DNA of 64,000 nucleotides, taken from positions 35,464,001-35,528,000 of the forward strand of contig NC_079173.1 in NCBI RefSeq assembly GCF_947568905.1, in the 5' to 3' direction. Below are positions 1 through 17,804 of this stretch, piece after piece. The notes under the pieces are model-generated. The model was not told the DNA's origin and did no database searches. It worked only from the letters and a program-made list of their open reading frames with translations. The stretch is from Ostrea edulis (taxonomy: Eukaryota). The position numbers and the translations under genes are program-made. Position 1 is the stretch's first letter. The number at the start of each line of letters is the position of its first letter.

Positions 1-337
1 TTAAATACAAAGAAAAAACATGAACAATTTGCTACTTATGGTAACATGGAAAATACCGGTATGTATATCAAACGTAGGCCGATGGAGTGGGAAGCTCTTC
101 ACAGCATTTCCTAATTAACATTATACTAATTAATCTATACAGGTACTGATTATAAAACATGGTACATACATTTCTATCAAAATACACAACATGAACAACA
201 TATAGGCCCTCTCATCTCACATCAATGCATCTTAAAAAAAAAACTTTTCCAAAATTCAATACAAAATTCACATCTGGCCCTTTTCTAGAATATATAAACT
301 TTTCATGCACAATTCTAAAAAAAAAACAAAAACAAAA

Positions 338-339
<2 letters not shown>

Positions 340-388
<49 letters not shown>

Positions 389-575
389 GAAGATGGCCAA
401 GGTCACAAGGGCAAATATCTTGGTACCAGTAGAAAGATCTTGTCAAAATAAATGCTCATGTACAACATGAAAGCTTTAATATTTACCATTTAGAAGTTAT
501 GACCAATGTAAACAAAAAATTAAAAGTAGGTCAAATGTCAAGGTCAAAAGGTTCAATACCCACGGAAAGGTCTTG

Positions 576-611
<36 letters not shown>

Positions 612-617
612 TCACTT

Positions 618-685
<68 letters not shown>

Positions 686-721
686 GGGGTCAAAAATGTT
701 GGTACCCACGGAAAGGTCTTG

Positions 722-757
<36 letters not shown>

Positions 758-798
758 TCTCTTACTGTTCAAAAGTGATAAACAAGGTTAAAGTTTTC

Positions 799-831
<33 letters not shown>

Positions 832-867
832 GGGGTCAAAAATGTTGGTACCTACGGAAAGGTTTTG

Positions 868-903
<36 letters not shown>

Positions 904-909
904 TCATTT

Positions 910-949
<40 letters not shown>

Positions 950-1006
950 GTAGGTCAAACTCCAAGGTCAAGGTGTCAAAGATGTTGGTACCACGGAAAG
1001 GTCTTG

Positions 1007-1042
<36 letters not shown>

Positions 1043-1048
1043 TCACTT

Positions 1049-1115
<67 letters not shown>

Positions 1116-1170
1116 TACCCCCGATCTTCGATCTCAGGGGGGGGGGGGGGGGGGGGGGGGGCATAAAAAA
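340..1170 (+). mobile_element. Non-autonomous Helentron/HINE-like element with about four 146-bp internal repeats
   Basis: Starts AACAAG; GGTCAAGGTCA-containing 146-bp units (569, 715...); (ACAG)n-like microsatellite; terminal CCCCC...GGGG hairpin followed by GCATAAAAA. Confidence 0.75.
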
Positions 1171-3861
1171 AAAAAAAGAAAAAAAAAAAAGTCGGTGTGT
1201 ATACTATACAGCAAAATATATTCACTGTAAAAAATTAGAAACTCACTTTTGATATCAAATTAAATCTTGCAATAGTTAAAACAAAGGATTGGCTGGTGTT
1301 ATGTTTGTTTACTAGAATCTGCACATCAAGAATTACTGGATTTCAATTCAAACAAAATTAATTTTTACATGGCTGCAAAAGACTGGCAGATTTTTTGCTA
1401 GGTTAGTAGAATTCTCAAGCGCTGCCACATATTGGACTAATGGACAAACTTGCTTAGGGTCACTTCATTAAAATATTTGTAGTAAAGACAGTCAATCTCA
1501 TGAGAGGAAATATGCAACAGTTCCTATTGGTGGATCCAGGATTTTAAGGATGAGATGAATTCCAAAGCCTAGCTGCGACACATTTATCTTCAAAGAGGGG
1601 TACCTTTGGAAATGCTACACTTAGCTTTTGGGAGACTGGACAAAGGCTGGTGTTTTCCGATTAGATTTTGTATGAAAGTTAGCAAAATTACCAAAAGAGG
1701 TGATGTGAATTTTTCATTTCTTTTAAATTTTCACTATCTGTAACAACAAATGATTTCACTTCCGTGGAAATTTAAAGGTGGATTCTGGACTTGTACGGGG
1801 CTTTGTGCAGTCTCTAGGCAGTCTCTGAACACTTTTGTGCAGATGGAATGAAAAACCACAAAGAATATTTCTCATTTTGTGTCTCTGACTATTTTCTGTA
1901 GAAATCTTTAAATTTTACTTTTATTTTTTTTTCATATATGCCTAGTGTACACTAATACCATGTTTTTCTGGAATGTAATGTTTGTTAGTTATAAGTACCA
2001 AAGAAAAAAAAAGAAAATAAATAAATTAAATTAAAAAAAAAAACTTGGAAACTAAACTACTATGTGCTCATTATTTAAATATTTGCAGTGCTGCAATAAA
2101 AATCCAATACGATTTAGAAAATTTAAGTAAATTTACTGGGAAACAAAAGGAGGACGGAGCATATGTGTGAAAAAATTGCATATATTTAACTCGATGCCAT
2201 AAATCAGGGGGCGTCATTTCACTCACTCCTTATAAACTGTAAGGACAAAATCCCTGTCACATTTTAACACCTACATGAATTAAAACATACAATGTTCTGG
2301 CAACTGCTACTCATATTTGGAATTAATTAATCAACATATTGTCAAGATTAATTAATACAGATTTGGTAGAGTTTTCAGCAACAATGACTTTGCACAATAC
2401 ATTCATTTCCTCCAATGTAAACAGGCCATTTGGGTTTATCAGGTATAACTTGTCATGTGGTGACCCATTTTATTCTCAGAAGCAAAATTGACTGCATTGA
2501 AATTTTAACAACCTGTAAAATTTTCATATGGTATCATTTAATTTTTCTCTTGGAGAAGGCCTGTATGAATTGAAACAGATTTCGAAGTTTTACAAGAGGC
2601 GACCGCCAATGGGAGGAGATCTTGCATAAATTATCAGTCTTGTCATCCGCATTGTCATCTTCATCGTCCGATGGATCAGCATCTAGTGAGAGAGATGACG
2701 TGGAGTCCGAATCAAGCAATGTCACACTCTCCGAAGACTCCTCACAGCTGAAAATGTAGGCAGCGGCAGTCAATACAACAATATTGCTCACTCCCTTTTT
2801 TAGTACATCAACTTGGTCACATCATTTTCTGTCTTTAAATATTTTTCTTCTTTATCACAACACTTAAAAATGCCAAATATTATTCAATGTTGGAGCGTTT
2901 CTGAGATCTTTAAAACCATACCTGACTGTTAATACTATACATGTATCTACAGGGAGTTTGGTTAAAACAACACACATCATGCACTATTTCAACAAAATAC
3001 ATGCAACTGGTGTCCAGGCTGTGATTAATTCCTCGCTTTCCCTAACCATCCATTCCATCCAAGACGATTTGTAGTATTTGGCACAAGTTGGCAATTATTG
3101 AAAAAAAGACTGGACGGTGTGGATATTGTGTCTCGTGTGACGGTAAATTGTATCACTCATTCCTAAAAGTAACCCTGTGGAAAATGTGAACTTTCTGAAG
3201 ACTTTCCGTGTCTCGAGTAATGGTACATGGTACATCGTACTCTTAGGAACTTCAAAGAGGTAACCAAGTGACAAGAAAAATTATGTACAAACCCTGCACA
3301 TCAAACACCCTGAATGAGACTTTAATTGAGCAAACTTATTTGAGACCTTGCACACATTCTAACATCCTGCTCACTTACAATTCTGCACAGAATTCACCCA
3401 AAGCAATATTCAAGCAGTAATACTGCTCCTGTTTGTATCACAGATTCTATGTAGAACACTCCATGAGTATGAGCTGAAGGCAGCAATGTTTGATAATGAA
3501 CCAAGGCAAAGGATCTTGACAGTGAAGGCACAAATTGATTTCCTGTAACATACATCATAAGATGCTAAGGTACATATAAATGAAGGGCAAAGTTTCTTTA
3601 AAAGGGGACTATCCTGGAAGGGAAGCTGTACAAGTCCAATGTTAAGGCTTTCTATGATCCAGACTAGAAAAATTTCTCTGATGTCCGCAGTTGAATCCGT
3701 TTCTTTTTCCGATTAAGCTGAGCTCGCCGAACTGCATCCAAGCTAACATCGGCACTATGTCGGACTAACGGCTTCAGGACATGTCTCTGGTATCTTGCAG
3801 AATTAAACATGGGCATACTTCCATTGAAGAGTTCCTTAAGGGGAGGTAAGCGGACCGCCAG

Positions 3862-4042
3862 TCATCTGGAGGGAGTAGCAGCTTTGCTGACAGTTTGTGA
3901 AGGTGTGGGTGAGGTGAATGAAGGAGCTGACGACGAGGCGGAACTACACTGTGACAAGGTGCGGGCTGATCCCAACATGCTGTGACTGGGTGCTTTAGGA
4001 GGTTTTTTGCCCATTTTAGGCAGACCTGAGGACGATGATTGA
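3862..4042 (-). CDS. TTLL4: TTLL4 last coding exon (S/P-rich tail, ends TGA)
   Basis: Acceptor TTTTTGTCTCTCCACAG; phase 2 matches the previous exon; reads SQSSSSGLPKMGKKPPK...AATPSR*. Confidence 0.8.
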
Positions 4043-5809
4043 CTGTGGAGAGACAAAAACAATAACTGACTGGCTAAACATACAAGAACTAAACTAAATA
4101 ATACACAATGCATGTGCAGCCTCCGTCCTAATGTATCCTAACTTCATATCCAATTTCAAATTATCTCAATCAGGTTCATAATCTTATATCTCAATTAGGT
4201 TAATAATCATTAATATATACTTATATCTCAATCATTAATATATACTTAATCTAAAAAAATCTTTTATTTTTTCAACATCCTTAATGAAATCTTTCATGTA
4301 GCTGCAAGACATGCAGATTTTTAATTGAAAGTTTTCCAGATAAGAATAATTTGATTGTTTTTTTTTAATTTCACATTCTTTATGAAATCTTCCATGCAAT
4401 AATCAATCACTCTGTGACAGATGTAGAATGGAAGTTTTCCAATATATTGGAATTTTTCTAATAATTCACTTTAAAGCTATAAAAATGAGGCAGAATCGTG
4501 AGTGAGAATATCAGTGGAGAAGCTGTGAACACACAGTGGAGGAACTAAAGAAAACTTCACTGCTTGAATGGATCGATCATCTAATTAAATTCAGCTCTTT
4601 CTGACACGACTGTCATTAATTTCAAGATATGTAATAAATTCAAATTATCGAAACTTTTATTTTTCGTGTTTATAATTTAATAAACCAAAATGAATGACAA
4701 AATTGGAACAAACATACAAAAAATAAGATAGTTTACAACATTTTTATTACTTTACTTTGAACTTACCATAAGTAGATCCATCCAAACAAGTCATGTTACT
4801 AAATATCTCAACCAATAATTCTTATGTACACAAACACACAGACATATATATGTGAGTGTGAATATAACACCCTAACTGCATACAAATGCACTCTTTAAAA
4901 TCACCAGTGACGGAAAATAACAAGGTGCTCTTTCTACAAGCAAAGTGACCGGTTAGTAATGTCTTGTAAGGGAACATTGTCTATATACAAGGACGATACA
5001 GATAATCTGAAGGCAATGTTTGAGACTGTTACATGTACATGTGTATCGTTAGTAATGCAACTACATGTTGTAGTAATTGAATAAAATTAAATCAAATGTC
5101 TAAACTTGTTACCCATACAGTATAGAGTAAGAAAATTCATTCTCATTCTTAGAATTCTACAATTAATAACATTTAGGGCAGGGACTTTCTTTCTCTATTA
5201 TAGAAGGTAGCCCATATTTAAACATTTAACACCCCCCCCCCCCTAATTTCCTGAACATGAATCTCATTTTTCGGTGATTTGCGGGACTCGTATAGCTGCC
5301 TGTGCAATGCATGATGTATTACAATGAGTACTGTTCACTTTCAAATCACACGCATGTCGTGCTAATTCAGGGGTGGATCTTAAATTTTAAAACCTGATGA
5401 CATCTGACTTACATCATTTTATACAAGGGAATCAAACTGCATGCTGCCCTATATACACACACAACAATCTGTATTAAATCTACAGTCTAGGTCAGGAATT
5501 TTGTTAACAGCTCAGAAATTGTTACACTTCAATAAATAACACACGTTATATACAGAATGTGGGCGGGGTGGTTCATGCTGGTTAACATTATACATGACAG
5601 GAGTTAATCAACATCACAGGCTCCTGGTTATAGCAAAATCAAATCTTATTACACAACAATATCAGCCTAATTCAAAGTCTTTCGTTAAACTGCAAACCAT
5701 TGAAATCGTTAACATTGCCGGTACCATTCAATTTCTGCAATGCTGTATTTGCTGGTATACTTTTCAGATGGCAAAGAACCACATTTTGTTGTATTTAGGG
5801 GGCGTGTAC

Positions 5810-5907
5810 CTGTGTTTGTGTGTGCCATCCTTCTCCACATGTTTACTGGGGGCGCTGTGTGTCCTGTTTTCGCCTCGATGGCTCAAAAGACCATTGGGAG
5901 GGCACCA
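5810..5907 (-). CDS. TTLL4: TTLL4 coding exon 16
   Basis: TTTAACAG acceptor, AG|GTACAC donor; 98 nt, phase 0 to 2, which bridges the flanking exons; WCPPNGLLSHRGENRTHSAPSK... Confidence 0.75.
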
Positions 5908-5978: not shown

Positions 5979-6748
5979 ATGACTGGGATTTGTGTGGATA
6001 TACCTGAAGACTGGGATTTGTGTGGATATATCTGATGATTGGGGTTTGTGTGGATATACCTAATGTCTGGGATTTGTGTGGATATATCTAATGACTGGGA
6101 TTTGTGTGGATATACCTAATGACTGGGATTTGTGTGGATATACCTAATGAATGGGATTTGTGTGGATATACCTAATGACTGGGATTTGTGTGGTATATCT
6201 AATGACTGGGATTTCACTGTGTGGATATACCTGATGACTGGGATTTGTTTGGATATACCTAATGACTGGGATTTGTGTGGATATACCTAATGACTGGGAT
6301 TTATGTGGATACATCTGATGACTGGGATTTGTGTGGATATATCTGATGATTGGGGTTTGTGTGGACATACCTAATGACTGGGATTTGTGTGGATATACCT
6401 AATGACTGGGATTTGTGTGGATATATCTAATGACTGGGATTTCACTGTGTGGATATACCTGATGACTGGGATTTGTTTGGATATACCTGATGATTGGAGT
6501 TTGTGTGGATATACCTGATGACTGGGATTTGTATGGATATATCTAATGACTGGGATTTCACTGTGTGGATATACCTGATGACTGGGATTTGTGAGGATAT
6601 ACCTGATGATTGGGATTTGTGTGGATACACCTGATGATTGGGATTTGTGTGGATACACCTGATGATTGGGATTTGTGTGGGTATACCTGATGACTGGGAT
6701 TTTTGGATATACCTGGTGACTGTGATTTTTAATATACCTGATGATTGG
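5979..6748. repeat. 28-bp minisatellite (about 27 copies, with 31-bp variants) containing the exon-15 donor site
   Basis: Plus-strand unit ATGACTGGGATTTGTGTGGATATACCTA/G; minus strand (C/T)AG|GTATAT in each unit. Confidence 0.95.
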
Positions 6749-6811
6749 GGTCCTCCGTAGGATTTTGGAGATGAAGCCCGTCCTCACAAAATCCTTCCAG
6801 CATGGCAATTC
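6738..6811 (-). CDS. TTLL4: TTLL4 coding exon 15
   Basis: GAACAG acceptor, CAG|GTATAT donor; 74 nt, phase 1 to 0; GIAMLEGFCEDGLHLQNPTEDPNHQ. Confidence 0.82.
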
Positions 6812-8398: not shown

Positions 8399-8609
8399 CT
8401 TTTTGTTCCATCCTGTTAAATCTCTGAACCCACTGACTGACCAGGAGGTTGTAGTACCGTGGGGCCTCCATGTATCGCAAGTACTTGTGGGAAGATGGGG
8501 TTGGAAACACGCGCTGGAAGCAACCCTTCCTGCTGTCTTCATCGATGCACTCTGTCAGAACTCGAATATCATCTGGCGTCAAAACATCCAAAATTGACTG
8601 CAAAGTTTG
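8399..8609 (-). CDS. TTLL4: TTLL4 coding exon 14
   Basis: QTLQSILDVLTPDDIRVLTECIDEDSRKGCFQRVFPTPSSHKYLRYMEAPRYYNLLVSQW matches the conserved TTLL4 C-terminal helix region; TTTAG acceptor (an alternative TGCAG lies 12 nt downstream), G|GTACGG donor. Confidence 0.92.
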
Positions 8610-17372: not shown

Positions 17373-17592
17373 CTTAAAAAGCATAGAAAAGAGACAATAT
17401 AATTTGTAAACGATTGATTTCATGGCGTTACATTAATACATGTATTTATTTTGAAAAGGAAATGGTTCAACACTTTTATCATCTGCGAGTAACAACTTCT
17501 CATGAAAAACAAATTTACTCTGTCAGAAGTCAAAAGCAGGAATATAAAAATCTACTGACGCAATTAAAAAAAAAAATTCATAGCCAACATAC

Positions 17593-17804
17593 TTCATGGA
17601 AGCAAATCGAGCAAGTCCATCCTCAAAAATATAAATCCTGAGAGGGTCGTAGCTGCTGACATAAACATAGATACGCATGTCAAACTTGCTGTCATTGATA
17701 AGGTAGGGGCGACCGAGGTATTTCTGAACAATGACAGGTCGTTTCCGTGGTATCTGGTTCCACTTGTTGATGACTTTGATTCCTATACCTCTGGCTGAGG
17801 CGGG
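17593..17804 (-). CDS. TTLL4: TTLL4 coding exon 8 (ATP-grasp KPPASARG motif)
   Basis: PASARGIGIKVINKWNQIPRKRPVIVQKYLGRPYLINDSKFDMRIYVYVSSYDPLRIYIFEDGLARFASMK; TTTTTAG acceptor, AA|GTATGT donor; 212 nt. Confidence 0.97.

Follow-up and report, generated by a model that had tools for sequence, protein, structure and literature searches.

A conserved in-frame UGA in an oyster TTL-family glutamylase gene is a likely site of programmed stop codon readthrough

Readthrough of a UGA followed by C is known from several animal genes, amongst them mammalian AQP4, OPRL1, OPRK1 and MAPK10, which carry UGA-CUAG, and LDHB and MDH1, in which the readthrough extension bears a peroxisomal signal; readthrough extensions of other animals also carry targeting signals. 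In Drosophila and Anopheles several hundred readthrough candidates have been defined by the coding signatures that follow their stops, and the documented cases of conserved functional readthrough are for the most part insect genes and a handful of mammalian ones. In viruses, the classical type II readthrough signals UGA-CGG and UGA-CUA are used by alphaviruses, coltivirus and a dicistrovirus, and the UGA is usually decoded as Arg, Cys or Trp by near-cognate tRNAs (PMC13517186). Here we analyzed a 64,000-nucleotide (nt) stretch of the Ostrea edulis genome (NC_079173.1, positions 35,464,001 to 35,528,000, free of N, hereafter the window), in which the annotated stop codon of a gene for a TTL-family glutamylase, a TGA at 3864-3862 on the minus strand, is followed by 65 open codons in the same frame. 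From comparative sequence analysis this TGA is likely to be a conserved programmed leaky stop that gives a longer glutamylase part of the time. Like the animal UGA-C readthrough genes, the locus keeps both the UGA and the C, shows a coding pattern and in-frame indels after the stop, and has an extension of a few dozen codons with short motifs; it differs from them in its host, a TTL-family glutamylase, in its occurrence in bivalve-like molluscs and in the context found in the window, UGA-CUG-G, and is known from sequence. A search of the full-text literature returned no report of readthrough in TTLL4, polyglutamylases, oysters or molluscs. The locus would be a new host gene and a new clade for the known phenomenon of conserved readthrough, and the predicted longer enzyme is shown in no annotation.

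On the minus strand the sequence reads ...TCC AGA TGA, with a C in the +4 position at 3861, and the frame continues over 3861-3667 as LAVRLPPLKELFNGSMPMFNSARYQRHVLKPLVRHSADVSLDAVRRAQLNRKKKRIQLRTSEKFF, from LAVRLPPLKELFNG at its start to NRKKKRIQLRTSEKFF at its end, until it meets a TAG. This layout had been described in a first-pass annotation of the window, which had also pointed to a GC-rich composition and to an RR...RKKKR basic cluster in the extension; all three were confirmed, the G+C content being 0.45-0.57 over 3625-4074 versus 0.20-0.39 in the intron and the distal flank. The features around the stop are as follows.

3865..4042, minus strand: terminal exon before the stop, (S)QSSSSGLPKMGKKPPKAPSHSMLGSARTLSQCSSASSSAPSFTSPTPSQTVSKAATPSR, with acceptor ccacag/T (here and below a slash marks the splice point), from the complementary DNA (cDNA) junction and translation
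3862..3864, minus strand: in-frame TGA, annotated stop and candidate recoding site, also TGA at the homologous codon of the relatives
3847..3861, minus strand: immediate 3' context CUG GCG GUC CGC UUA, used in the comparison of stop contexts between lineages
3667..3861, minus strand: extension of 65 codons, from the phmmer and profile matches, the NG86 counts, the openness of the frame and AlphaFold2
3664..3666, minus strand: second in-frame stop, TAG, end of the extension, from the sequence

Sixty-five open codons are expected by chance with a probability of about 0.04 ((61/64)^65), which is weak evidence alone; the open frame rises above chance because it is conserved in other lineages. An antisense open reading frame (ORF) at 3809-3985 on the plus strand overlaps the TGA site.

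To find relatives of the extension we searched its 65 residues with phmmer against 1.84 billion representative proteins, in which ORFs of 70-224 residues lay within the length range. This search led to five short predicted proteins, one 89% identical and the others 44-56% identical, that apparently read R-W-(L/R)(A/S)VRLPPL, and a profile search added three more (in all P0001, P0003, P0004 and P0007-P0011, from loci L001-L011). The DNA of every protein match, those added by the profile included, has an in-frame TGA at the apparent Trp, and translation with the standard code does not reproduce the protein. The W at this site is there because the contigs were gene-called with a code in which TGA is Trp. 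We therefore dropped the idea that the relatives have a true Trp codon (TGG) and that the window carries a TGG to TGA nonsense mutation. Public protein collections contain ORFs from eukaryotic contigs called with this code, and their W at TGA is false. The loci fall into distinct lineages: the window with L008, L001/L002, L003/L004, L006 with L009, L005, L007/L012/L013 and L010/L011. L008 is a second sample of the species of the window, with one amino-acid difference and the TGA kept, and L006 and L009 are near-identical to each other. The L006 sample is sea water taken over a cold-seep community of mussels and crabs (PMC9357000), and L006 may accordingly come from a mussel. A scan of Joint Genome Institute (JGI) metagenomes for further taxa returned only haplotypes of the L007 species.

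The homologous codon is TGA in seven of seven lineages (the window and six others), with AGR before it and C after it. Amongst the protein matches within the searched length range, which leaves full-length annotated proteins outside it, no lineage has a sense codon, TAA or TAG at the site, and this absence of sense-codon relatives, which would be easier to find, is suggestive. The contexts read as follows.

Window, L001: AGA TGA CTG GC(G/A) GTC CGC
L003, L006, L009: AGG TGA CTG GCG GTC CG(T/C)
L005: AGG TGA CGG TCA GTC CGC
L007: cag/G TGA CTG TCA GTC CGT
L010: cag/G TGA CTA GCG GTC CGT

The C in the +4 position is invariant, whilst the bases that follow vary between UGA CUG G, UGA CGG U, UGA CUG U and UGA CUA G. 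Two of the lineages carry UGA-CGG (L005) and UGA-CUA(G) (L010), and these hexanucleotides are identical to the type II viral signals, for which decoding by near-cognate tRNAs is expected; L010/L011 have the exact UGA-CUAG of the mammalian readthrough genes. Viral type II sites usually have an extended stem-loop 2-16 nt downstream, in contrast to the oyster site, where no conserved structure is predicted. The GUC CGY that comes shortly after the stop is invariant across the lineages, synonymous sites included, which suggests that the first 15 or so nucleotides 3' of the stop may themselves be constrained. In L007 (2190-2210, ttttgcag/) and L010 (903-923, tttcaaacag/), as well as in L012 and L013, a splice acceptor sits 1 nt upstream of the TGA; an intron is placed there in L007 and L010 because a pyrimidine tract with CAG is present and similarity upstream is lost. 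The last exon of these two loci begins G-TGA, so that almost all of its conserved coding content comes after the stop.

After the TGA every lineage keeps the frame open over 60-72 codons with all indels in frame, and none of the other five frames is open in all of them. We compared the proportions of synonymous (pS) and nonsynonymous (pN) differences by the Nei-Gojobori method (NG86), L001 standing for the other genus closest to the window, with the following results.

Window versus L001, extension: pS 0.77 (saturated), pN 0.09; differences at the three codon positions 11/6/31; 89% amino-acid identity
Window versus L001, same exon before the stop: pS 0.65, pN 0.18; 72% amino-acid identity
L003 versus L006, extension: pS 0.49, pN 0.14; ratio of nonsynonymous to synonymous rates (dN/dS) 0.19

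In the oysters the extension is therefore held more tightly than the coding part of the same exon before the stop (pN 0.09 vs 0.18). Arg codons swap between AGA and CGN in the window and L001 with the residue kept, and alignability with L001 collapses about 10 nt past the TAG. By these codon-level measures the extension is under strong purifying selection. Residues V3, R4, L5, P6, P7, L8, P17, S21, R23, Y24 and R26 are invariant, a Lys/Arg patch is present near the C-terminus in every lineage, and the end is aromatic in five of the six other lineages (EKFF, EQFF, DLFY, DYFY and SFFTY; L007 ends QPRD). The extensions of L007 and L010 contain no Met and their conservation starts at the first codon after the TGA; on this evidence internal initiation is excluded as the source of the conserved peptide. 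The alignment of orthologues proposed in the first-pass annotation hence gave a conserved TGA, a kept frame, a pN far below pS and in-frame indels; orthologous stops or indels lacking codon-level conservation were not seen.

The host gene is assigned to the TTL-family glutamylases by a Pfam TTL match (E 7.8e-31) on 17526-17804 of the minus strand, the exons being analyzed one by one. The structures nearest to the TTL-domain coding sequence are those of TTLL7 and TTLL6; no structure or named full-length match from TTLL4 came up, and the TTLL4 label of the first-pass annotation is a putative one. The exons of this TTL/ATP-grasp domain lie at 21466-8399, on the same strand as the TGA. Between them and the terminal exon we placed the following coding exons.

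8399..8609, minus strand: coding exon n-3, ..DVLTPDDIRVLTECIDEDSRKG..VQRFNRMEQK, with donor AAAAAG/gtacgg, ending in phase 1, from sequence and frame
6738..6811, minus strand: coding exon n-2, 74 nt, G-IAMLEGFCEDGLHLQNPTEDPNHQ, with acceptor gaacag/GA and donor CATCAG/gtatat, entering in phase 1 and ending in phase 0
5810..5907, minus strand: coding exon n-1, 98 nt, WCPPNGLLSHRGENRTHSAPSKHVEKDGTHKH plus AG, with donor CACAG/gtacac, ending in phase 2, from the cDNA loose end

The chain 8609-8399, 6811-6738, 5907-5810 and 4042 is consistent in phase, and from 4042 onward it is in the frame of the TGA. Both small exons are conserved in L005 with the same phases: exon n-2 has a counterpart of identical 74-nt length at 129-202 (GISLLELFCEEGVHLENPTSNPYHQ) and exon n-1 one at 387-493. 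Since the chain is phase-consistent and kept in L005, the TGA shares the frame of the glutamylase coding sequence. A direct splice from 8399 to 5907 gives a TAA at about 5846, a difficulty that was resolved by the 74-nt exon 6811-6738 found via L005. The coding part of the terminal exon before the stop is kept in frame in L001, L003, L005, L006 and L009, with indels that are multiples of 3. A search for upstream exons in L012 gave none within 3 kb, two of the exon queries being off frame.

The last junction was taken from three spliced cDNA-like contigs, two of which (X1 and X2, 95-99% identical to the window) come from an organism A and the third (X3, about 90%) from an organism B; these are assembled contigs, in which minority variants drop out. 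X1, X2 and X3 are unbroken on 3577..4047, 3256..4047 and 3430..4047, respectively, and are colinear over 4047-3256, with no splice at the TGA or in the extension. Our comparison reached window position 5700 and found no depth in 4065-5700. The genomic match ends at 4047/4042 with a loose end, and in the three contigs this loose end matches 5815-5844 with one mismatch; the last junction therefore joins the donor CACAG/gt at 5810 to the acceptor ccacag/T at 4042, and the junctions upstream of position 5700 rest on these 30 nt. The ambiguity of five bases (4047/4042) arises because both sides read CACAG. The start of the terminal exon in the first-pass annotation was corrected to 4042 on this evidence, and an acceptor at 4026/4025, obtained by phase arithmetic with exon 8399, was likewise dropped. 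X1 has 9 differences from the window, all listed and none at 3862-3864, so that the A at 3862 is kept; this statement rests on the X1 consensus, X2 having 22 differences of which 20 are listed. Between the window and organism A there are two differences in the extension (3823 and 3691), both at third positions and synonymous by codon count, and five in the 87 nt of 3' untranslated region (3'UTR) that follow it. The contigs also define the following feature.

2400..3663, minus strand: long 3'UTR of the assembled isoform, from X1 (records 1-3) and X2 (records 7-9)

Taken together, the stop is conserved, a coding signature follows it, the mRNA is colinear across it and the context is a leaky one, which are the comparative marks of conserved readthrough genes. 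Under programmed readthrough most ribosomes would terminate at the UGA and yield the annotated glutamylase ending ...ATPSR, whilst a fraction would read the UGA through a near-cognate tRNA (the amino acids commonly inserted at UGA are Trp, Arg and Cys) and translate a further 65 codons up to the TAG at 3666-3664. Such decoding would be driven by the local UGA-C(U/G)(G/A) context. The long form would carry the linear motif VRLPPL..FNG..P...S.RYQR, a basic patch resembling a nuclear localisation signal (NLS) or an element that binds tubulin tails, and an aromatic C-terminus, and the extension might change the localisation of the enzyme or its partner binding. In the alignment its parts appear as an N-terminal motif (L/R)(A/S)VRLPPL(K/Q)(D/E)..G..P...S.RYQR, a variable Ser-rich linker, the basic patch NRKKKR and the end EKFF. 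No Pfam family was matched by either tail piece, and AlphaFold2 modelled the extension with low confidence and no globular fold (mean predicted local distance difference test, pLDDT, 65.8; predicted template modelling score, pTM, 0.21). The basic cluster, read in the first-pass annotation as NLS-like or microtubule-binding, recurs in every lineage and may have either role; together with the conserved N-terminal motif it resembles a docking motif combined with an element for nuclear localisation or for binding tubulin tails. The first-pass annotation had offered two explanations, of which programmed readthrough is strongly supported on comparative grounds (TGA-C kept, dN far below dS, in-frame indels and a similar aromatic end) and stops short of being proven. 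The other, an allele-specific CGA to TGA change, is refuted by TGA-C in six lineages with saturated synonymous sites, in L008 and in cDNA 95-99% identical to the window; the TGA is an ancient conserved codon.

Several observations weigh against programmed readthrough. The support is comparative, from DNA and cDNA sequence, and the sampling of relatives is sparse since they surfaced through gene calls that read TGA as Trp. The UGA-CUG of the window is not among the best-characterised readthrough motifs. We found no conserved stimulatory RNA structure downstream (consensus -2.7 kcal/mol; folding z = +0.40), and therefore the short context would be the sole determinant of efficiency, which may be low. 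Finally, selenocysteine gives an identical comparative signature and is excluded only by an unsuccessful search for a selenocysteine insertion sequence (SECIS).

If the UGA encoded selenocysteine, the gene would be an unrecognised selenoprotein gene and the extension the rest of its coding sequence, decoded by way of a SECIS in the 3'UTR. As in eukaryotic selenoprotein genes, a conserved in-frame UGA is followed by constrained coding sequence, molluscs have large selenoproteomes, and one weak SECIS-like hairpin at about 290-190 (minus strand) of the window fits a loose descriptor. Against this, neither window 1-4200 nor any of L001-L005 had an Rfam SECIS match at E <= 10, and a custom descriptor had no match in L001, L005, L007 and L010. 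The sole candidate in the window is AT-rich, of the GTGA type, 3.4 kb past the TAG and outside the conserved islands. This hairpin (about 190-290, minus strand; GTGA ... AA ... GA, -16.3 kcal/mol) is unconserved in L001 and unscored by Rfam, and we judged it a chance match. Unlike in selenoprotein genes, no Cys homologue was found at the site among the relatives, all of which have TGA (full-length annotated proteins being outside the search range), there is no redox-type motif around R-U-L, and an invariant +4 C with type II-like contexts does not characterise selenocysteine sites; we give this explanation little credence. Another route to a long protein, to which we give slightly less, is a different mRNA isoform that enters the TGA frame past the stop, by splicing or from an alternative transcript, such that the UGA is never decoded. 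The locus does have a complex 3' end with a second conserved terminal exon at 2747-2534, and here it resembles genes with alternative last exons, the phase of this exon fitting that of exon n-1; the stop lies within a donor-like AG/GTGAC in L003, L005, L006, L007 and L010, and the acceptor of L007 and L010 falls 1 nt before the TGA. Yet the codons immediately upstream of the TGA are coding, and codon-level conservation sets in with the codon directly downstream of it. The flanking codons enclose no conserved AG or GT, and the AG/ATGAC of the window and L001 does not form a donor. The assembled cDNAs run colinear through the site, and the exon of L007 and L010 still begins G-TGA in frame. Unlike an alternative last exon, the extension is out of reach of every splice that would preserve the conserved frame.

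Adenosine-to-inosine (A-to-I) editing of UGA to UGG (Trp) in some transcripts would also remove the stop, as it does at the amber/W site of hepatitis delta virus. It yields a sense codon and would explain why the genome retains TGA, and since assembled contigs drop minority variants partial editing could hide in them. We regard it as highly improbable: the X1 consensus keeps the A at 3862 with its 9 differences elsewhere, no long duplex surrounds the site (z +0.40), and the sole predicted helix shows little covariation and would involve bases that belong to an intron in L007 and L010. Least credible of all is an ordinary stop followed by a 3'UTR, with conservation acting on RNA or DNA (regulatory or antisense) or with the TGA as a recent nonsense allele or assembly error. 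The chance of the open frame given above and the antisense ORF over the site speak for it; against it, third-position differences dominate, synonymous sites are saturated, Arg residues are kept through the swaps between AGA and CGN, indels are in frame, no other frame, antisense included, is open in all lineages, and the TGA recurs across seven lineages and is also seen in independent samples and cDNA.

Beyond programmed readthrough in its plain form, a wider proposal is that the UGA is an ancient regulated switch between short and long glutamylase that extends beyond oysters, or that it is decoded unconventionally, for instance as selenocysteine without a canonical SECIS. It would cover the mussel-like lineages and the marine lineages with an intron ending 1 nt before the UGA, and in it the long form of a glutamylase of tubulin or nuclear proteins would be rerouted, in compartment or substrate, by VRLPPL..RYQR and the basic patch. 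As a whole we consider this proposal unlikely.

The window contains a further conserved coding exon of this gene, about 900 nt past the TAG of the extension.

2534..2747, minus strand: second conserved coding exon, CEESSESVTLLDSDS..DDEDD..LCKISSHWRSPLVKLRNLFQFIQAFSKRKIK and a stop, with phase-2 acceptor acattttcag/C; counterpart in L001 at 1647-1871

Compared with L001 it has a pS of 0.89, a pN of 0.15 and indels that keep the frame; upstream of acattttcag/ the two sequences no longer resemble each other. Given that the phase-2 acceptor matches the donor of exon 5907-5810, this is probably an alternative terminal exon; the cDNA contigs are unspliced across this acceptor. Judging from these exons, the locus may make three C-termini. 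In the intron between exons n-2 and n-1 a 28-nt minisatellite (5979-6749, 27 copies, 87% identity) begins within exon 6811-6738, at its 3' end, and repeats CATCAG/GTATAT on the minus strand, so that the intron has about 27 tandem donor-like sites. In the 3'UTR, a conserved island at 2970-3010 (minus strand; L001 1337-1375) contains two TGCATG motifs, GTTGCATG.. and GTGCATGATGTGTGT, that look Rbfox-type; checked as a SECIS, the island at 3010-2970 showed no stable or conserved fold (z -0.34). This island is followed in L001 by an inserted (TG)n run. Another island, of 50 nt at 15-64 (minus strand; L001 2718-2766), some 3.6 kb beyond the extension on its downstream side, is 82% identical between these two oyster-like genomes.

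The artefact through which the relatives were found can mislead, yet it offers a search route to recoded UGAs. The contexts UGA-CUG, UGA-CGG and UGA-CUAG form a natural series for the study of context rules, and a lophotrochozoan case kept through saturated synonymous divergence would extend the phenomenon of readthrough. For the tubulin code, the analysis predicts a hidden glutamylase isoform, truncated in standard annotation, that has a conserved motif at the C-terminus together with an NLS-like patch.

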